A stretch of 64,000 bases of DNA, from positions 372,001 to 436,000 of the forward strand of contig JBLDXI010000009.1 of the NCBI GenBank assembly GCA_047495785.1. The letters are read 5' to 3'. The position numbers and the translations under genes were made by a program. Source of the DNA: Lepidodermella squamata (Eukaryota; Animalia; Gastrotricha). Of this stretch, positions 44,417 through 56,522 are shown piece after piece. Under the pieces are notes generated by a model. It saw nothing but the letters and a program-made list of their open reading frames with translations, searched no databases and was not told where the DNA came from. How positions within the stretch are numbered: position 1 is the stretch's first letter; every line of letters starts with the position of its first letter.

Positions 44417-46584
44417 TTAAACTATAAGGGATTCCAAGAACCGAAGTTGCGGCTCGGCTGTAAGAAATCGAGGCGGCTTGTATTGGTTGATGACGCTATT
44501 GTTTCGCTTGAGGTTGAATTCTCTGAACGCATTGAAGCCTCCCTTCTTTATCGTGAAAACCTAAGGAGAACAGAATTCACTATTACAGGACAATTTTATC
44601 ATTTTAATGGACCTTTGGTGAGATGATCGCGTTTCGGGAGCGATAAACATTGTACACTCCGTTTTGTTCCATTAGCTCCTTCTCCAAAACTTCTGCAACT
44701 TTCGCGGGCAACGGATTGTCATTGCCGTCGGCTTCGACAAATATGACGTAAAATAGATCGGATTCTTTGACTAATAAACATCAAATTAGTTATAAGCAAA
44801 TCAATTGTTTATACAATATTACATCCGCCAGCCCTTTCTGGAAACATCGAAACCCAAACGTTGCTTAAAGTTGTCGTGAATTCATGGAGAGAACCCACTC
44901 CAGCGGCAGCGAGCCCTTTCTTGATAGCAGTCATCATCAAATCTTCGCCGACTTTCTCCCCAGCCAAGTCCAACAGGCTTCCCATCCGCCCGCAATAGCG
45001 CATTTCAGGAGTTTTACCTCTCAAATTGACGCACTCTAGGAGATCGCCGATTCGGTATCGGTAGAACCCAACTATGGTTGTGACTATCAATTCGTATCGT
45101 TTGCCAACTTCAAGCTCCTCCATGAAGTAAATTCTCGGATTCTCAGCATAGATTTCACTTTCTTCGATGAACTCGAACACCGCTTGGTTTGGAGACAACG
45201 TAAACAGAGGCTCATCTGTGCCGAATGGTGTGCACAGCTCACCGAGGTTTACGGAGTAGAAAGTTTCACTAGAGCCAATGCCGCCAGTGAAAAATCGCAC
45301 GTTAGTACCACAGTACCATTGCATGCGGTCTCTTTGAAGTTGGTGAGATCCAGAAACCGCGACGCCCATGTAGGCTGTAATTTAAAGGTTGTACAAAGGC
45401 GCGATGGAGCATCATCTTTCAACTTACTCAACCTGGGCCAAAGGCGACCTACAACTCCTTCAGCTGACTTCTCAAAAGCTGCTTCAATTTCATCAGCTCG
45501 CTCGGGATCCGCAGGAAGCTGACCTTGGCTTAGAATTGATTCTTTTATATCCTGAGGAATAGATGGTGGTCCTGTAATCGTGCCGTTTCGAATGTCATGC
45601 GCGTAGGATCGCCAATGTTTCTCAAGTACGGAAAGCGCCCCGAGAACACTCCCCGGAAAAACTCCCTCGATGCCGATCAAATCGCGATCAGACAATGCAA
45701 AGAGCCACCTCAGGTAAAATTGAGCTTCATCCTCGAAGTAAATTGTGTCGACTTGCTTCGGGTAAACCTTGGCCTGGAAATAAGCTTCATTCTTGAAGCT
45801 CGGCGGATAAACGGAAACAATGCTAATACGATCACCCGCTGGTGTGAACTTCGGCTTTGTGGATATCGCAAGCGATATTGATTTGAGTGGAGATAACCAG
45901 TGAACTGTCTTGAAGCGCTGAGTTACGGCATAGCCAGTCATAGCCATCTTGAGGCCCTTCTTATAAAATGTTGTGCTCGCCGGTAAGAGCTTGGGTTTTC
46001 CTAGATTCATTAAATGTGTTATATTGGCCTGATATTCGAAAGTTTAACATACCCGTCGTTCCACTCGATGAGTTGTACAGTTCGATCGTATCCGATGTTA
46101 TTAGATTAGTTTCGCCGTTGTTGACCATTCGTTCGATGTAAGGCAAATAGGTGGAATATTCAGTCAATGGATGAAGGCTCTGCAAATCTTTGCGAGATTT
46201 GATCTTACCAATATTGTTGGCTCTACCGTATTCAGTGTTTGCATTCATGTTAACAATCTCACGCAATAGCTCCTCTTGTACAGGACCAGGATCCGGCAAT
46301 GATTGCTGCAATTTTTTCAGCTCCTTTTGGCTGAGAATACGCAAGGTCAGATTGTAAAAAGCATGAATGAGAATTCCTCGAATAGATTGATGGCGCTTAG
46401 AGATCGGAACAGTCGCAAGGCGAGCGAGGAAAAGTGCTGCACCCAACAAGACGATTTCGGCCAGTAGCACCACCAATCGGCTCAGAAAGCAACAGCTGCT
46501 GGTGACATTCCACATAAATCTGGCGAACAGCAGAATCGCAACAACAGCGCCTAAAAGACGCGTTGTATAGTGATTGGTTTCCAT
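44417..46584 (-). CDS. GHDC: GH3 domain-containing protein (adenylate-forming GH3 family) with N-terminal TM helices
   Basis: 'NANTEYG', 'PLTEYSTYLPYIERM', 'SSSGTTGKPK', 'FEFI', 'GFYRYRIGD', 'GEKV', 'QYKPPR'; four short introns reconcile the ORF frames. Confidence 0.88.
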
Positions 46585-46983
46585 GAAATTTTGCTTTGAT
46601 CTAGCAACTGATCCTATTCTATTTCGAGTTGACCCTCTTTCTTCTTGTTGTCGTGGACAGATAACAAGAGCTTATCAATAAAAGATTTAGAATGGGTACC
46701 GCATTTTATGCATCACCTTATCGCTTCTTATCTTCCATACTGATATAAGTAACACGAAAATGTCTGAACAATCTTTGGCAATGCAGCGAAGGCGAAATTG
46801 AACTTTGAGCTTGGTACCTTGAACCGCTGTAAATGCGTAATTTCAGCGCTAAATGTCAACAATGTACCGCAATAAAGTATTTGTGCTTTATTTTGCAAGT
46901 TGAACTTAAAAAAGAATGCATAAAACATGAAAAAATCCAGTTTAGAGAGTGTTTTATCTAACTGCAAACATTGTCGGGCTGAC

Positions 46984-49900
46984 TTAGGCCTGAAAAAGAG
47001 AAAATTTTGTTAGAATAAATGATAACATCAACATCTATATGATAAGTACCTGACTGTTATTAACAGGCGTCTCGTTATTTGTGCCGCTATCATCTCTGGA
47101 TTGGGCACCTCTTACGACGAATTCTCGTATAGCAGCAACGGCGTTATTTGGGCTGAGAAAGGCACTGTCCAGTATTCTCAAATTATGCGAATTAGCAGCA
47201 TTAGGTTGAGAAGATGGAGAATCGAATGGGCGATTGGCTGCCAGCAAGTTAAATGCGGACCTCGATGAATTGAACAATGTCTGAGCACTGGAGTTGGCCG
47301 CCATAGCAAGTTGAGATCTGCCATCCATTTGACGCATCAGATGCTCATTGTTAGATAATACAGTAGCTATCGGTACATCAAAGTAGAATCCCCAATTATC
47401 CTCTCGATCAACGTAGTTAGGGATCTGTTCTCCGGAATTGAATGTCGCCAAGGGATTAGATGTGAAATAGCCTCCAATAGCCTGGACGAGATTATGAGCC
47501 GAAAATTTCGTCATTTCGACATTCCCTATCTTAGAGTCTGTTATAGTGACTTCACCCCTTTCAGAGCCTATTATGGTTCTCATCGGCTCGTCAGAGCCAC
47601 CTGTAACCCGGCTCGACATCAGATCTACTCCGTCACGGCCCTGAATTGTAGTGCTTCCACTTTCGGTGGAAATGCCTGAGTCAACGGCTGTCACGGTGCC
47701 CCCAGCTATGATTGAGGTTTGCTGGCCTCCTGCTACATTGGATTTATCCATTGAAATATTATTCGATGCTGTGACATTGAGAGACCGGCCCGAGGTCAAA
47801 TGAGCACCTGAGAGTGTTATATTCTGACCGGATTGAAGACTCGAGTCGGCACTCGGTCCATTAGCCGCTATGACATTGAATGATCGTTCACTGCTCTCCT
47901 GCCATTGACGGCTGTACTCCCACATACCACCAAACCATTTCGTTGTCTGTTGAGTCGTCGTCGTCTTCTCGACATCTTGCATTTTAACGCCACCGGCAGC
48001 TTGAACATTGAAGCCGTCCGCCGCTTTTATATTCGCAGATGTGTTCTGAACTTGATTGCCAGCTCGAACTGCGAAAAATCCATCTGTTTCAACATTAGCA
48101 CCAGCAACTCTTGTTTCCCAAGTGGTTGTAGACGTTTCTCCAAACCAAGTCTTTTCGTCTGTTTTACTGGCTACAGCTTGATAAGAATCAGCCTCCAATC
48201 GGACGTCTCCTTTCGCGGCGTTCACCAAAACATCTCCTCCAGCTTTGACGTTGGTACTTCTGAGAACAATCGATCCATCCTCGCTTTCGATTATAACTCC
48301 CAAATTTCGGGTGACGTTGCGCCTAGTTTCGGTCCCAACACTCTTTTCAACGGCTTCGTATGGTCTACCTCCTCCAGCCTGAACAGAAGTGCTGAGAAGT
48401 GATTGCTCGCTGCCGCCATTCATGCCTTGAATAGAAACATCCCTTTGAGCACTCAGGATTATACCCTTATCACCGGTAAGTTTTGATGCTGTCAAATTCA
48501 CGTTGCCTTGATCGCTTCGAATGCCAACTTGACCATTAGCTGCATCAATCTTCGCTTGATCCAGGCTGACATTGCCTCTTGCATGAATAACGACATCCCC
48601 AGACGCAGAAGCTGCATTCGAGTTGTTATTCATCGTAACGTCACCGCCATTTGACAGGAGAGCCACTCCTTGGAGGCCTGTAACTGAGGCTTGGGACCCG
48701 ATGGTAACGCCACCACTTTTAGCCATAAGAACAGCTTTTCCCGCCTCTGCTGAGACTGAAACGCTGTCGGCAAGATTGACGGCATTGTTTGCAACGAGCC
48801 GAACATCTCCAGTTGTGGCAGAAATATTGGCCTGAACGTCAACTGAGTTGGCGTAAATCCCAATACCATGTTTCATTTGTAGCAGCCGGTCAATGATAAC
48901 GGTCTGGTTCGGAATCTCCAAGTTTAACGCTTGTGTCACCTGCAGCTTCGAATAGCCGTTGGTTCGATAGAGAATGGCTTCAAGATTTTCAAGATTTTTC
49001 TCAGCTCTGATGTCCAACTTTCCGAAAACCTGATCAGCTACAGTATCAAGATTAACAGTATCCGCGTGAACCTGGGCATGAGCAACATTCATCGAACCGC
49101 CCAGGGTTGCTGTAGATGAACCTTGGACTTTCAAATAATCAGCGGTTACCCCTCGAGCGGAAGAAACGTCGCCTTGAATGAAAATTCTCTCAGCCTTGGA
49201 ATCGGATACCGATGCTTGACCTTGAGCCGTCGCAGCAATTTCACGAGTAGCGGACGAGTCTGAGATGAAGGCATTTCCAGAAGAACTGCTGGCGATAATA
49301 CCCGCAGCTTGATTAATCCCTGCCACCCTGGCGCCAGACGCGCCCGATGCGCTCACTGTGGCAGATGACGATGAGTTTGTGATGGAAGCAAAGCCTTTCT
49401 GTGAAATAGCTTCAATTTGCCCACCTTGCTGACGCGTGATGAAGACATTATTGTCAGCAACTGCTTTCAAGCTTTGAGAAGCATCGTTATCGTGGGCAAC
49501 AACTGAGGCCCCCTGCAGCTGAATGTTGCTGGCTTCCAGCCCATGAACATGAAGGTCTGTCTTAGCCGACGCGGAGATGAAATCAGCTTTTGAATCGAAA
49601 ACATTGGCACTGCCGGAATCAGCAGTAACAAGCAGCTTGGATTTCGCAAATGAATCTGATACAAGTGCATTGCCGTTATTTTGAACAATCGCTCTGAAAT
49701 CGCCATAGGCCATGATATTTCGAGCAACAAGATTGTCAGCTGCAAGACGGACATTATCTGCCGCCATTATCTGGCCCGTTGTCTCCAAATATCGAGCACT
49801 TACTATGACATCCATAGCGGCCAGAATTCTGCCATGATTCGTGAAAGAACCTCCAACGTAATCCGCCATGTAAGATCCTGCTGCCAGGACCATGCCGTCA

Positions 49901-52900
49901 TTATGTCCATAGAAGCCACGATCAGTAACACTGAATCCAACTCGAAGCCCTTCGTTCATGGAAAAGATTGACGTTTCGTTGAGTGACGGCAGGAGGTAGT
50001 TTCCAGCCAATAAGTACGCAGCCTTTCCAATATCAACCGCGTCGATTTCATACCCGGTCGGTACCTGCTCCAGGTAAGAGTTATTGAGTACAACGCCTTG
50101 GTGGATTTCCCGCACTCCAGCATCGAAAATTGTGTAAGCTGACACGCAATCCACGACAATTCCAATTATATCGGTCAGCTGAATAGGCATGTCTACGATG
50201 CCATTTTCCCGAATCTGCTGAACCATAGCTTTGATCTTGACAACCAGAGTGAAGAAAGTTTTGAATAACCCAAGCAACATTAGACCAGCCTGAGCAATCA
50301 TGACAGCGGCTCGAGCTTGCGGTGGCAGAATTTGTTGTAGGGTGGTCAACAAACAGTTCACAATATGAACTGGATTTTTGAGGAGCTCTTTGGTCGGAAG
50401 AGTAGGCAAGGCTGCGTGTAGTAGCTCAATCTTGATGATAGCTCTTATGAATCGCGAAAAAGACAAGGTCACGCCGACAAGCAGAAGCGAGATGATTCCG
50501 CTTATGTTCAACAAAGGTGCGTGAATTACACCCAGGTTGACGAAGCACAGACAGGTGACGGAAAAGGTATTCCATGCGAAAATTGCTCCGACGTTGACAG
50601 CTATCACCTGAATCGCCATTTGTATGTTGGCAGATCTTGCCGCGGCAAGAAGATTAGCGAACACCCATGCGTTAACATTAAGCGATCGGCTAGCTTCGAT
50701 GTCCTTTGTCACGGCGAAAATTACAATCTTCGCTTTCACAACTAGGTCCTTGCAGTGAACCTTTCCGCGGATGATGATCATTGGAAAAACAGTCAGCATT
50801 TCCTTGAGGTTTTTACCAAACTGCTTCAATTTGCTCTCTTCTTCTGCAGAGAACTTGTCTGGAGGTTTCTCTCCGTCGCCTGGAGTTTTGACTGGGGCTT
50901 TCTTTCGTTCCAACTTTCCAGCTTTTAAAATTAGGCCCTTCTGACAGTCAATAGCACCTTTCTTGGTTACCTTCAGGGACTTAATCGCATGAACCGACAA
51001 GCTTTGGCAGTTGATATTGCCAGAAATCTTGAACTTTAGTGTAACAACGGCGACGTCACATTCCGCGCATTCAATCAGCCCTTTGATGACCGTTTTGCCA
51101 TCGTCGCACATAAGCATCAAGTTCTTGGTGGCGTCAACAGATATGACGTAGCCATGTAGTTCCAAGCTCTCCATTCCAGCGATAAAAATACTTTGCTTCG
51201 GAGGTTTTTTGGCCAGTGCGGCCTTTTCCATGGCAAGTTTGCTGAGATTCGGCATGAAAGTTTGCACAAATGGGTCTCCGAAAAACGCAGACGCCGCATA
51301 CATAGCAAATTTCTTGCTTTTCTTCAGCTTGGGTTTCTCACATGCAGGGCTCTGGTCTTTTTCGTTATGAGTTGATTCTTTAGAATCACATGATATTGGA
51401 GAGCCAAGTATCAGTCTAGACGTTTCACTGCATAACATGGTTTTGCAGATGATATTGCCGCTTGGTAAAGAAACTGATCCATGGCACTCAAACCGGCCGG
51501 ATTTCATCTTCAAGGTTCCATTGAAACTTGCAAAAGCTCCTTGTTCGACAAATAGAATACTCAGTTCATTGAAAAGAGGAGCTGAGTGGAATAAGGCATG
51601 AAGGCCCTGGCTCAAGCGCAGTTCGGTCACATCCCAAATCACGACTTTTTGAGCTTCGATCGTGTTGACGCTCATTGAAAGACTAGCGACATTTTCCAGA
51701 ACAAGCTCGTGCACAATAAGGCTGCCTGATCCGACAAGACTAATCGACGTATTCGGGGAGGCCGCCAGAATTTTCAGCTGGCCAATAACAACATTGCCGT
51801 TAAAGGCGATCTCCGCAGGTCGCTCTTCATTTGTTCCTCCTAGCACCCCCATTTCGCATTTTCCAAGGAAAACGTCCTTGGTGAACTTCAAGCTAGAACC
51901 AGTCACAAATCGTGCGACTCCCTGTTTGCCCAAGTCAATTGGACAAGATGTGATCAGCTCGCCATCTTTGCATCCGAGTTGAGCAAAAATTAGCAGTGGC
52001 TGCAATTCTTGTCCGAGTTTGATATTCAGCTTCAACCGCGATGAATTGTACGCTTTCACAATTAATCCACGGCTTGATTCCATTGTGCCGCTCACCTTCG
52101 TGTCGCCATGATCATATAGCTCAACGTAAATGCTGTCGGATTTGCTCGTCAGACGGCCGTAGTAGTTGTCCAGCCTTCTGGCTATCACCCGGATCGGGCC
52201 GTCTGATTCGAAATTGCCATCATTAATCACAGTTGCCGCGCAACCGACTGTCAAAGAGCTATGGCCGAGCAAACTTGCGGATTTGAAAAATTCTAGATCT
52301 TCTTTAGCTGCGATGATGAGGTTGTCGGCAGTGAGCCGGCCACTGTTTTTAATCGAGGATCCGCCGCGAATCATTAGGTTTGTTGCCTCGACCCGAGATC
52401 TATTCTTTAGTTCAAGCCCCTTCACAGCACTGATTTCCAGCTGGTCACCAAAGATAGAAGCGTCTTTTTCAAGAGCGAAAGTTCCTGAACATTTCAGCGA
52501 ACTCATCTTCGCCAATCTCATAGTGCATGAAGGATGCAGAGAGATCGCCTCGCCAACATGGAAAACCAGAGACTTGGCTTCCCCGGTAGTGGCGATGGAT
52601 CCTTTTTGATCCCAGTGACCTTCGACTAGCAGGCGAAAGTTCGTTTCCCCTGGCTCAAGGCTGAGAATACTACCCGGTTCTGATTTTAACTCACGGCAAG
52701 ACAGTATAAATAACTTTGTTGAAGAATTAGGACGAGGTGATAGATGAACACGGCTTCCTTTTAAAAGCCGCAGGCAAGAATTTGGAGCGGTAAGTGCATC
52801 CGTAAATTTGGCTTCATTCGATTGAATAATCAACTCAGAATAGCCCGAAGCCTGGGAATTTTTGATAATGGCAGCAGTGAAGGGTCCGTTTAAATGAATC

Positions 52901-54105
52901 GGGCTGCTAAAAGTTAATGCAGCGCCGCTTTTCGCCCGAACCGTCATCTGCTTAGCAGTAACTTTGGCGTTGTACGCAACTCGAACGGCAGATGTTTCAT
53001 AATCGAACTTTTCAACGTTGAAACTACCATCAACGACAGAATCTTCCTCTGATTTAGTAGCCAGCTTCAAGCTGCCATCAGGGCAGATGAATCCAGCAGT
53101 CGAATCTTGCACGAATTGACTGGTTGAAATACTCAACAGGCCAGCCCATTTGAAAACCGATGACCGATTGTGAAAGACGTTCCTTACAGCTAAGGATCCT
53201 CCAAGTCGTATTGATAAATTAGCAGATGGCTCAATGACGAAATCGTTTGCGCTAAAATTATCGATCCTATCCCATAAAAGCTTCCCGGCAAGAGTTGCAC
53301 GACCGACTACAACGCCGGTAACATTACCAGACGACCAGTCGCTCCCAGGACGCAGGTCAAGATTTCCTTCAATGTTCAGATTTGCTGTCATCCCTTTAGC
53401 GGCATTTGGCTGTCTAGTTATGCTACCTGATTTTGACAAGATGAAATGTTGGCATTTTTTCACAACGAATTCCTCGCCGACAGCAATAACGCCGTCAATA
53501 TTCAAATCTTCAACACTTTCGAGTGAGGCTTTTTGGCATGAGATGCGCCCACCCTCAGAGATCTTTATCGATTCAGCCGATCCTATGACAAGTCCGGCAC
53601 AAGTTACAGCAGAATTCTTGAGAAGATGTGTAGGTCCTTCGCTTGAGATTAGATTTAATTTGTTAACAGCGCATGACGATACTTTTAAGGAGGGCGCTGA
53701 GACGGCGAGTCGACTCGAAGGTTCGTTCACAGCAGTTATATGTAAAATTAGAGGAGCCATCTTTGAGCATTCAATTAATAAGTTTAAAGGCGAGGCGCTT
53801 TTCGATTGTAAACACATTTGAACGGTATTCCCGTGTTTGTTTGCTGACCACGCTGCTTTACCCAGTAGTTCCAGCGATGAGTTTGCATAATGTAGTCCGC
53901 TGATAATCTGGCCATTTGCCGCATCGTCCAAATCTACATTGAACTCGGCGTCAATAGGAAAACCAAGTTGTTGCAGCTGAGAAAAGACGAGTTGCCGAGA
54001 GAAGTCGATCGATGCTCTTGAGGCAGATTTTTCGGCTGAATTTGGATTCGGTTCAAAGTTTGGTTTAGGAGGTGGCTTCGGGGGCCCATCTGATTTAGTA
54101 GCCAT
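46984..54105 (-). CDS. Giant filamentous-haemagglutinin/CdiA-like repeat protein (~2350 aa) with a central hydrophobic region
   Basis: 7056-nt uninterrupted exon 54105-47050, plus a probable 60-nt terminal intron and a GCC TAA exon. Beta-helix-like repeats 'IKNSGRLTADNL', 'VINDGNFES', 'LDNYYGRL', and 'GGDVLVNAAKGDVRLEA...KTWFG', 'LQSGQNITLSGAHLTSG'. The ORF is certain; the family call is from motif resemblance. Confidence 0.7.
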
Positions 54106-55007
54106 GACGTTTTTCAGCTTTGCTCTTGTAAATAATGGTTCTACAGAAGTAGGAATTTTATCTGTAATGACTCTGTAGATATCACGGCTGATGAGATTTC
54201 AAATGCATGATGATGAGTTATAGTTGAGAAATAATATGTGTCATCAAATTGCCAGCTGTGATGTGGGGGTACATATATAATGGTATGAATCAGTGCCTGG
54301 CTTATGACTGCTGTAGTTTTTTCATCGGTGTGTGTTGTTTGTTTCAGGTACTGCTGAGGCCGTGTGCTGCAATTCAAAAACATGTCCTTTTGCAAGGGCA
54401 ATGCATAGCATTATACAAAGTATATTGATGTTTGCCACGACCGCACCAACCAGGCTTATATGTATATCTGAGACGGAAAAAAGCACGTGAATAAAGTGCG
54501 TTATAAATGGCGGTGTTTCTCGATGAATCACCAAGACTTGGAACTTTGCCGCATTTTCGGGTGTTAGCCGCTCTCCATTATCTCAGTCTGATAGCGATAA
54601 GAGACGTGATTGAAAAAAAGATAAATTGAAAATTGATTCACATGCGATTCAGATTTCACTAATTCATGTTATTTATTTATCGTCGAGCTAGTTCCATTAC
54701 GCACTCCAGTCACTCTGTTGTTATATTTGGCGCGCTGGCAGGAAATTGTAGAAATGTAATTCGAATCAGAGCAAGTGCATTTCATGGCTATTTACTGGAG
54801 AGTTTAAACGAAATGCGAATTTAGGCTAAATAAGACTTCCGCCCCGAACTGTCAGCTGTGCATGAATAAATCGACCCTAATTCGGTAAACGACGCGATTT
54901 TGCCATGCGCTGTCAAATCTCAGTTGGATATAGTCAAATTGAGTTGGGCGGGCAGCTTTGTCTACCATTTCTGGAATTTAGAGCTGCGTTGGTGCGATAA
55001 GGAAAAT

Positions 55008-56522
55008 ATGCGATTCGCATTGCTAAGCTTTCTGCTATTTGTCAACATTCGTTCGGGTAAAGTTCAAAATGAAGTTGAACAATTGAATTTTAGTTTCACA
55101 CGTCATAGGAATACACGCTGCTTGCCCATCGCTGGACTACGAGGACGACGAAGTGGGAGAAGTGTGGTGGCGCAGTCCTGTTACCGGTTGGAAGCTGGTC
55201 GACAATGATAGAGACTTTTTCGCCGGTCAAAGCGGCCGCATCATCTGCGCGGACGGCCGCGGGAAAGAAGCTAGGTGCACCATCGCGTGGTCCGGCATGA
55301 GTTGGACTCCAGACGATATCACAACTTTCAAATGCTGCGATGGAGGTTAGCCCTATATAATCTGACTATAATCACACAATTAATATTATTTTTTTGCATG
55401 AAGTAAAATGCAGCAACGGAGGAGATTGTTGGCGCGGTATTTGTCGCTGCAAGTTCGGTTGGAGTGGTCCGAAATGCAAAAACTGTACGCTTACATTATC
55501 TTAATTGCCCACGTGATTACCATTCCTAACTCTGTTTCCACCGATGCTCAAACCTCAAACCTGAAAAATTACTTCAAAAAACCTTAATTTCAAAGTGGCA
55601 TTATAATAACGTGTTTGGTATGTCTTTTTTAGTTACCTGCTCTAGCGAATGCCTCAATGGCGGGAAATGTATCGCTCCGAAAACCTGCGAATGTCTCAAA
55701 GGGCAATGGGAAGGCCCATTTTGCAATAAGGGTAATTCGATTGTTTTCATGATTGACTAATCGATGACTATTATATTCGACCATTTGGCGCAGCTATTTG
55801 TATACCCGAGTGCCTGAAAGGTTCGTGTACTGCACCCGGAACCTGCACATGTGACCCCGGTTGGACGGGCGCAACATGTGAAACTCGTGAGTTGACTTTA
55901 TTTATTGCTTGCTTCAATTTTTTTAAGCTAATCAACTGAAATAGCGATATGTTCTCCGCAATGCGATAATGGTGGCCTTTGCACAAGTCCGGACGTTTGC
56001 GAGTGTCAGCGTCAAGAAAATGTTGCTCATTATGAAGGTCCTCTTTGCGAGAAACGTGAGTCCAATTTCCTAAAGAATCAATCAAAATTGCCTTGCTTGG
56101 TAATTTTCAGGGGTCTGCACCCCAGCCTGTGGCAATGACTCGTATTGCGACTCAAATTTCAAATGCAGTTGCTCGCAAGATTCATACGCTCCGTGCCAAA
56201 AAGGTTACATTAAAATTGTCATATTGAAAGTTTCCTATTTCTTAAAATATTTAGAAAGACGAGATGAAGGCGACGCTGACGTGACGAATTCTAGTCCAAC
56301 ATCAATAATAAGCAAAAATCAAAACATCTCAGACGCGCCGAGTAAAATTTACTCATCCTATTTCAATATAATCGATCTGAAATATAAGTAAATGTTGTAG
56401 GCTTCACGACTTTGTCACAATCAGCGCCGATTATCGATTCGCCAAGATATCTATGGTTCCTCTTGGTGGCCGTTGCAACAAGGGCCGATCTACTTCATTT
56501 TCCGAAATCTTCCTCCATCTGA
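55008..56522 (+). CDS. Secreted/anchored sushi-like + ~5 EGF protein without SEA (cluster gene B)
   Basis: Signal '[12 protein letters not shown]', head 'CPSL...[12 protein letters not shown]...IICADGR...C...W...ITTFKCC', EGF exons, hydrophobic C-terminus '[10 protein letters not shown]'. Confidence 0.78.

Follow-up and report, generated by a model that had tools for sequence, protein, structure and literature searches.

Teneurins are the textbook case of an animal adopting a bacterial polymorphic-toxin scaffold. They are type II membrane receptors of animals which derive from bacterial YD/Rhs polymorphic toxins, and the transfer to animals of toxin domains as well as of the YD/Rhs scaffold is already known (PMC13018210, PMC3482391). 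Another bacterial design is that of the exoproteins CdiA and FhaB (TpsA proteins of the type Vb secretion systems; PF05860, PF05594, PF13332), each a giant and mostly beta-helical rod. In CdiA, an FHA-1 arm (FHA, filamentous haemagglutinin) is followed by middle domains, an FHA-2 arm and a variable C-terminal end; the filament bears the middle domains at its tip, and the target membrane is where FHA-2 acts (PMC9086364). The searched literature yielded no report of a scaffold of the FHA/CdiA type (Fil_haemagg) encoded by an animal. Here, I describe such a candidate in a stretch of 64,000 nucleotides from the gastrotrich Lepidodermella squamata (contig JBLDXI010000009.1, positions 372,001 to 436,000; the whole stretch is hereafter the window). 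It contains a giant open reading frame (ORF), the product of which is here called protein A. On balance, the most probable reading is that this is a functional nuclear animal gene, that its family, eukaryotic and very small, descends from FHA/CdiA-type two-partner secretion (TPS) exoproteins, and that it codes for a membrane-tied filament.

The likeness to CdiA and FhaB concerns size, shape and the order of the parts. Protein A is predicted to be a giant, mostly beta-helical rod as well, in which an FHA-1-like arm, a non-repeat middle module, an FHA-2-like arm and a variable end follow each other as they do in CdiA. The family yields weak to significant Pfam matches, TpsA proteins are the best solved structural neighbours, the FHA-2-like half has almost no cysteine or none at all, as in the bacterial hits P0008 and P0012 described below, and one of the paralogs (paralog C) ends in a lipase, resembling the tip of a polymorphic toxin. 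Unlike CdiA and FhaB, however, protein A is the product of an animal nuclear gene that has an AATAAA signal and probably a spliceosomal intron; neither Sec signal nor TPS domain nor TpsB was found for it; and no RBD, YP domain, VENN pretoxin motif or immunity gene was recognised at its locus. Moreover, its middle module is a hydrophobic helical pair without known relative, and its N-terminal arm is rich in cysteine. As for teneurins, they set the precedent for the surface display, by an animal, of a giant bacterial polymorphic-toxin scaffold, and paralog C appears to share their type II layout, with a cytosolic N-terminus, one transmembrane (TM) helix, an extracellular stalk and a toxin-like tip. 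The scaffold, though, is an FHA beta-helix instead of a YD shell and comes from another bacterial system; teneurins are broadly conserved in bilaterians, whereas the FHA-like family is rare and patchy; and protein A has no N-terminal anchor. New here are the two paralogs (one with anchor and lipase), the family-specific middle module, the cysteine-free C-terminal half and the rarity of relatives.

The kinship with FHA/CdiA proteins emerges when protein A is searched in pieces and together with its paralogs. Residues 558-605 match PF05594 (Fil_haemagg; 17.1 bits, E 0.0089, cut-off 21.5) and residues ~1854-1896 match PF13332 (Fil_haemagg_2; 15.1 bits, E 0.025, gathering threshold 22 bits), both below threshold; paralog B passes the PF13332 cut-off of 22 with 23.8 bits in pieces and 25.1 bits in a genome scan. 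A profile made of residues 1100-2200 of protein A with paralogs B and C was searched against 1.84 billion protein representatives and retrieved only 19 proteins at E <= 0.001. Significant PF13332 matches are present in the hits P0008 (2.9e-16), P0011 (1.5e-11; 45.2 bits), P0010 (2.8e-11; 44.3 bits) and P0007 (3.7e-6; 27.6 bits, for the same cut-off), and the hit P0012 (GBF22684.1; 9.5e-12) is a Melainabacteria protein with a TPS domain. The family profile links protein A to PF13332-bearing members at E 4e-11 to 2e-15 and reaches bacterial TPS- or DUF2345-bearing proteins at E 1e-12 to 1e-7, the identity of protein A to bacterial members being ~25-30% over short stretches only. Profile searches of PDB sequences with alignments A1 and A3 returned nothing meaningful, and a pattern scan (A4) of JGI metagenomes returned patterns and no confirmed relative.

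Predicted structures point the same way. AlphaFold models residues 1372-1560 as a beta-helix with a predicted local distance difference test (pLDDT) of about 90 or above, and the top three matches to this segment among 48,161 solved chains are TpsA proteins, namely HxuA (Z 20.4; root-mean-square deviation 2.3 A over 181 residues), HMW1 (Z 19.2) and FhaB (Z 16.9). Language-model features (ESM-Atlas) of residues 1480-2200 point to Fil_haemagg_2 clusters (0.90), which is a lead only. The threonine-rich KTWFG/TKWFGG motifs lie within this C-terminal arm (residues 1376-2150), which is a diverged Fil_haemagg_2 region. Along the N-terminal arm, N-x-G rungs are kept across the family, with invariant Asn and Gly columns; among solved structures (VIA-align), the TPS domain of HMW1 (Z 21.9) and EtpA (Z 20.3) lead, and the ESM-Atlas shape search places a bacterial Fil_haemagg cluster first (TM 0.81, 485 residues), with TPS-domain clusters next. 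Solved TPS domains superpose on residues ~290-600 with Z 20-22; because generic beta-helices score similarly, this superposition is evidence at the level of the fold only. At that level the N-terminal arm may be regarded as FHA-1-like, its support from sequence being weak. The reading of the two arms as distant relatives of bacterial FHA/CdiA exoproteins, with a C-terminal half of the FHA-2 type, is thus supported by Pfam matches of pieces and paralogs, by transitive profile hits and by predicted structure. The initial annotation had come to the same assignment, FHA-like for the N-terminal half and haemagglutinin-like for the C-terminal part, from motifs that are all located in the translation (GGDVLVNAAKGDVRLEAD, DEKTWFGETSTTTWE, QQTTKWFGGMWEY and SGQNITLSGAHL). 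The beta-helix it expected is modelled at residues ~240-890 and 1372-1560 (pLDDT ~90), and the haemagglutinin similarity it expected exceeds the PF13332 cut-off in paralog B and family members, though not in protein A.

The distribution of cysteine divides protein A in two. All of its 30 cysteines lie in residues 1-1320, and none in residues 1321-2356 (47038-50145; 1036 residues), where ~24 would be expected at the frequency of the N-terminal half. The split is common to paralog B and to P0001, a metagenomic relative, and the bacterial hits are almost free of cysteine throughout. The beta-helix fold as such does not impose it, because the N-terminal helix holds many cysteines. Past the C-terminal arm, the motif NWGFYFDVPIA, common to proteins A, B and C, opens a low-complexity tail in which no enzyme or toxin domain was detected (no Pfam family in residues 2146-2356 up to E 0.1). 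Neither a VENN/pretoxin motif nor a C-terminal toxin nor an adjacent immunity gene was found, the downstream gene being one of the GH3 family.

Between the two arms, AlphaFold places two long hydrophobic helices, with low confidence, at residues ~1262-1301 and ~1310-1346, and the hydrophobic windows of the protein are 1181-1224, 1266-1295 and 1303-1331. The stretch around them (residues ~1100-1400) is the best conserved of protein A, with 39-47% identity to paralog B as against ~16-34% in most others, and the module is 53% identical to the metagenomic fragment P0002 and 52% identical to P0001. The initial annotation had overlooked this module. It is also present, in non-hydrophobic form, in the distant relatives P0003 and P0007. 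No known relative of the module was found, the feature and shape searches of the ESM-Atlas having given chance-level rows.

In the 121-Mb genome (151 contigs) to which the window belongs, the FHA-like family comprises three loci only (A, B and C), with 22-31% identity, B and C being found on two further contigs, 1.8 and 2.1 Mb in length. A frame of 2198 codons makes up paralog B (C46), which is 28% identical to protein A and collinear with residues 257-2162 of the latter. Just upstream, in another frame, there is a further beta-rich frame of 257 codons (L008 7709-8479, minus strand), weakly collinear with residues 71-256 of protein A; at the junction of the two frames a GTAAGT...TTTCAG stretch measures only 27 nt, so that one has to do with an exceptionally short intron or else with a frameshift. 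Residues 1-240 of protein A match this upstream frame weakly and collinearly (E 0.06). Paralog C (G000:C31:926478-932402, minus strand; L007 4478-10000 and L013) consists of three frame pieces. The first has a hydrophilic N-terminus, a single strong TM helix (KILIAAGVIISALLIASIAIGVVI; Kyte-Doolittle hydropathy, KD, 2.85) and an RKRR furin-like site; the stalk is FHA-like and matches residues 1723-2008 of protein A; and the C-terminus is a class 3 lipase (Lipase_3) with GHSLGG (Pfam 23.2 bits, cut-off 22). From sequence, paralog C would thus be laid out like a teneurin, as a type II protein that ends in a toxin-like tip. Its region before the lipase is matched by the C-terminal extension of P0001 (residues 2002-2441; 27%, E 7.6e-13).

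The gene of protein A resides in the animal genome; it is transcribed, and purifying selection acts on it. The reads of a DNA run (X1) cover the ORF and 1.1 kb upstream evenly and without joints, at a word depth of ~80-130 (the check took in the ORF and the 5' flank), and so give no sign of the chimeric join that the initial annotation had named as its possible undoing. The G+C content of the ORF is 46.8%, and 45% at third codon positions, equal to that of the neighbouring exons. A contaminant was rejected on the grounds of the even coverage, the neighbour-like composition and the paralogs on other contigs; a transposon or virus cargo was likewise rejected, no terminal, inverted or tandem repeats having been found around the ORF and the neighbours being ordinary animal genes. 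Among the allelic differences listed for X1, 36 of 40 fall at the third codon position and 38 of 40 are synonymous, and the frame is therefore under purifying selection. Allelic divergence in the ORF amounts to 1-3%, almost all of it synonymous, save for positions 51820-52114; over these 295 bases X1 contains two contigs, one identical to the window and the other with 21 differences (7%), which suggests two strongly diverged haplotypes. A second run (X2) is a cDNA library, because adaptor sequences of SMART cDNA are present in it as loose ends; its contigs touch 27 of the 30 bins of 49200-55199 and none at 54200-54399, just upstream of the ATG.

As to the gene model, the ORF of protein A (2356 residues from an ATG, on the minus strand; Table 1) is uninterrupted, in an open frame stop-free for 2387 codons, and the probability of such a length by chance is negligible. 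The 7-kb single exon of the initial annotation is hence present, besides which there is a candidate 3' mini-exon; it is this mini-exon and the candidate intron before it that account for the lower limit of 46984 given there. The candidate intron is similar in size to that of the neighbouring gene of the GH3 family (GHDC-like), which lies directly downstream (44809-46584, minus strand) in three overlapping frame pieces; its 52-nt intron is canonical (GTATGT...TCTAG, 46002-46051), and across it the Pfam GH3 profile runs on without a break in the two exon pieces (positions 90|91). The surrounding exons are mostly small, as previously noted, and the neighbourhood further includes EGF-like and SEA-like exons and a cNMP-binding/kinase gene.

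At the other end, the translation begins with the Pro-rich stretch that had been reported (MATKSDGPPKPPPKPNFEPNPN). No signal peptide was found in protein A, the first 60 residues being rich in Pro, Ser and Lys and devoid of a hydrophobic core, with an in-frame stop upstream of the ATG; nor did hydropathy and sequence disclose an N-terminal TM helix. Neither the whole protein nor its pieces hit the TPS domain (PF05860), even at E-values as high as 1, and in the 121-Mb genome there was neither a hit of PF05860 nor a match to TpsB (ShlB-type, PF03865); the genome-wide absence of both is weakly shown, because control genomes were silent for both families. All this agrees with the early view of a protein without signal peptide, TPS domain or TpsB partner, the last two weakly so at genome scale. 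The 5' leader holds a pyrimidine-rich, acceptor-like site (...TTCTGTAG) ending at 54141. Farther upstream, an open frame of 86 codons (54325-54582, minus strand) includes a very hydrophobic stretch (VGAVVANINILCIMLCIAL; KD 2.47); it has no suitable ATG and overlaps a TATA-like stretch, and X2 contigs touch 54400-54999 at very low depth. It could be promoter or 5' untranslated region, or else an unrecognised (anchor) exon.

Table 1. Features of the protein A locus, in window coordinates, with the basis of each assignment
Feature	Position	Strand	Basis or remark
ORF of protein A, 2356 codons and stop	47035..54105	-	main or only coding exon; ORF listing, cDNA contigs, allelic single-nucleotide polymorphisms
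Candidate 60-nt intron (GTACTT...TTTTCAG), phase 0 after codon 2352	46990..47049	-	sequence
Candidate terminal mini-exon GCC TAA, replacing the VLII* ending	46984..46989	-	sequence
AATAAA polyadenylation-type signal, ~95 nt past the candidate stop	46887..46892	-	sequence
5' leader	54106..54200	-	in-frame stop 31 codons upstream of the ATG; cDNA contig depth 0 at 54200-54399
aa 1-240, Pro-rich start and variable N-terminal region	53386..54105	-	6-7% identity to paralog B; AlphaFold pLDDT <50
aa ~241-890, N-terminal right-handed beta-helix, FHA-1-like	51436..53385	-	AlphaFold pLDDT ~90, VIA-align, ESM-Atlas, Pfam, invariant columns
aa 891-1100, two charged linkers, rich in Lys, that flank further beta segments	50806..51435	-	16.5% Lys; sequence
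aa 1101-1240, hydrophobic beta rungs closing the N-terminal arm	50386..50805	-	42-47% identity to paralog B; pLDDT ~70-80
aa 1241-1375, family-specific helical module	49981..50385	-	hydropathy; A/B identity 39-47% (aa 1201-1400); AlphaFold helices, low confidence
aa 1376-2150, C-terminal beta-helix, FHA-2 (Fil_haemagg_2)-like, Cys-free	47656..49980	-	Pfam, profiles, AlphaFold, solved matches, atlas features, Cys count
aa 2151-2356, motif NWGFYFDVPIA, then poorly conserved Ser/Asn/Ala-rich tail	47038..47655	-	sequence, paralog comparison

The relatives of protein A are few and scattered. The nearest, P0001, is 40% identical over residues 874-1642 (tblastn) and is encoded on a 15-kb metagenome scaffold, where it adjoins a C2-domain gene. 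Its ORF is broken at L009 1430-1495 by a gap of 10 N followed by telomere-type (TAACCC)n repeats, with CTGCGATGG duplicated on both sides; an intron at this frame change was rejected in favour of the scaffold gap with its (TAACCC)n, apparently an artefact of scaffolding. P0003 (3952 aa) is encoded where a 1.6-Mb contig has few genes, and nine metagenome contigs carry exon-like pieces of P0027. The EukProt set of a hydrozoan, Clytia hemisphaerica, includes P0010 as a transcript, and other contigs contain relatives that are 45-62% identical to it; the Clytia set may be contaminated. One contig 62% identical to the Clytia member (L012 3230; Logan SRR22824300) shows a single frame change relative to the Clytia protein, with an overlap of 4 nt between two ORFs, which reflects either an error of sequencing or a genuine frameshift.

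The family is rare and patchy among the 1.84 billion proteins; it sits mostly on eukaryote-like DNA, is deeply divergent internally and has no close bacterial member. The bacterial Fil_haemagg families are very large and the eukaryotic clusters few, about a dozen only, for which reason a transfer out of bacteria long ago is the most parsimonious interpretation. The horizontal acquisition proposed in the initial annotation would fit this distribution, and the event would seem to be old and to concern the family rather than the gene of protein A alone.

The mechanism here proposed is as follows. The parts required for bacterial export (Sec signal, TPS domain and TpsB partner) would have been lost or never received. 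Protein A would form a rod tens of nanometres long, with arms of ~16-23 nm and ~19 nm if reckoned at ~19-20 residues and 0.48 nm per rung, and the hydrophobic helical pair in the middle might tie the rod to a membrane or insert it therein. The cysteine-free, FHA-2-like half and the variable tail may then be displayed outside the cell and make contact with microbes or other cells. Paralog C would achieve surface display more plainly, by means of its type II anchor, furin-like site and lipase tip. The initial annotation had thought of an adhesin or a toxin-delivery scaffold; because protein A lacks a recognisable enzyme tip, an adhesive or membrane-active filament would be likelier than a toxin carrier.

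Several observations weigh against this proposal. At the level of sequence, searches with the whole of protein A were blank (Pfam, NCBIfam, PDB sequences and a word-indexed protein database), protein A itself stays below every Pfam cut-off, and a pattern scan (A1) of 185,579 prokaryotic genomes gave patterns and no confirmed relative. At the level of structure, Foldseek returned nothing at E <= 0.001 against PDB with either model, but only generic beta-solenoids, and for the N-terminal arm an autotransporter (Vag8) ties with the top TpsA matches, phage tailspikes being close behind. The helices of the middle module are modelled at pLDDT <50; their hydrophobicity is moderate, with a maximum KD of 1.8 (2.1 in a segment modelled as beta), and weaker still in paralog B; and a hairpin of two helices would, as modelled, leave both arms on the same side of the membrane. 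No signal peptide or anchor was detected in protein A, and an upstream exon may exist; X2 consists of contigs, which do not show the strand, the splicing or the exact 5' end of the transcript. Lastly, it is from distribution, and not from a tree, that a horizontal origin is put forward.

Part of this evidence would also fit a purely intracellular rod, that is, a cytosolic protein A whose hydrophobic hairpin would fasten it to the plasma membrane from inside, or to an organelle, and whose bacterial ancestry would have supplied no more than a stiff beta-helix. The mapped ATG without signal peptide and with an in-frame stop upstream, the cDNA contig coverage that stops near this ATG, the hairpin that keeps both arms on one side of a membrane and the cysteine-rich N-terminal half (2-3.5%), possible in cytosolic proteins, are all in keeping with it. 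Yet a C-terminal half devoid of cysteine over 1036 residues, a trait kept in paralog B and P0001, is hard to explain in one reducing compartment when the helix of the N-terminal arm tolerates cysteine; paralog C is clearly designed for the secretory pathway, given its type II anchor and furin-like site; and N-x-S/T sequons reach their highest density over the last 600 residues, which is weak evidence. The intracellular rod is accordingly deemed rather unlikely.

A more far-reaching possibility is that the family forms animal contact-dependent delivery filaments derived from CdiA, paralog C with its anchor, furin site and lipase tip, and proteins A and B with a membrane-inserting module, all of them rods at the cell surface with which an animal cell would touch a microbe or a foreign cell and damage or probe its membrane; as in bacteria, the cysteine-free FHA-2 arm would then pass through a membrane in the unfolded state. 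I hold this to be improbable.

Protein A could be a pore-forming or membrane-damaging toxin comparable to ShlA, HpmA and ExlA, released for instance by secretory or defensive cells of the animal, the middle module acting as a pore in microbial or prey membranes. These cytolysins share with protein A the TPS-type beta-helix, and a membrane-active function would fit the hydrophobic module, whose helical pair is the best-conserved part of the protein; the TpsA cytolysin HpmA is a structural neighbour of the N-terminal arm (Z 12.4) and figures in the Foldseek list too, and ExlA is a pore-former which bears Fil_haemagg_2 (PMC5705979). They differ, however, in being exported by TpsB and in being shorter (~1,600 aa), and neither the pore-forming regions of ShlA and ExlA nor any toxin family finds a sequence match in protein A. 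The module, moreover, is not hydrophobic in the distant members P0003 and P0007, and no export signal was found, so that a released toxin appears quite improbable.

A non-bacterial origin, in which a eukaryotic beta-solenoid would have converged on FHA-like repeats or served as the source for a few bacteria, is very improbable. It may appeal to the Pfam scores of protein A, which are below cut-off, to the compositional simplicity of beta-helix repeats, which makes them prone to spurious similarity (a caution given in PMC4061105), and to the nearest relatives of protein A, all on eukaryote-like contigs. Family members nevertheless pass the PF13332 cut-off with 24-45 bits, the profile reaches bacterial TPS and DUF2345 proteins at the E-values given above, the parts follow the CdiA-like order of FHA-1-like arm, middle module and FHA-2-like arm, and the literature found to name these Pfam families concerns bacteria, as against about a dozen eukaryotic clusters. 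Finally, an artefact or contaminant in which an animal contig was fused with DNA of a bacterium, a symbiont or a virus, to which a 7-kb intronless ORF with bacterial-type repeats amid short-exon genes might point, has next to no probability in the face of the even and joint-free coverage, a composition equal to that of the neighbours, the lack of flanking terminal or tandem repeats, paralogs on two further contigs of megabase size (one of them in exon-like pieces and with an anchor of animal type), the cDNA coverage, the AATAAA and the intron-like 3' end.

To come back to the membrane-tied filament of FHA/CdiA descent, its existence, if true, would add to the teneurins a second and independent case, built on the other great scaffold of polymorphic-toxin systems, the FHA/CdiA beta-helix, and would mean that this route of adoption has been used more than once. 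It would offer a tractable animal system in which to learn how a type Vb filament works without an outer-membrane transporter, and an inroad to the role of FHA-2 at membranes, a role not yet clear even in CdiA (PMC9086364). It would also open the way to the use that early-branching or small invertebrates may make of such filaments in defence, allorecognition or adhesion.

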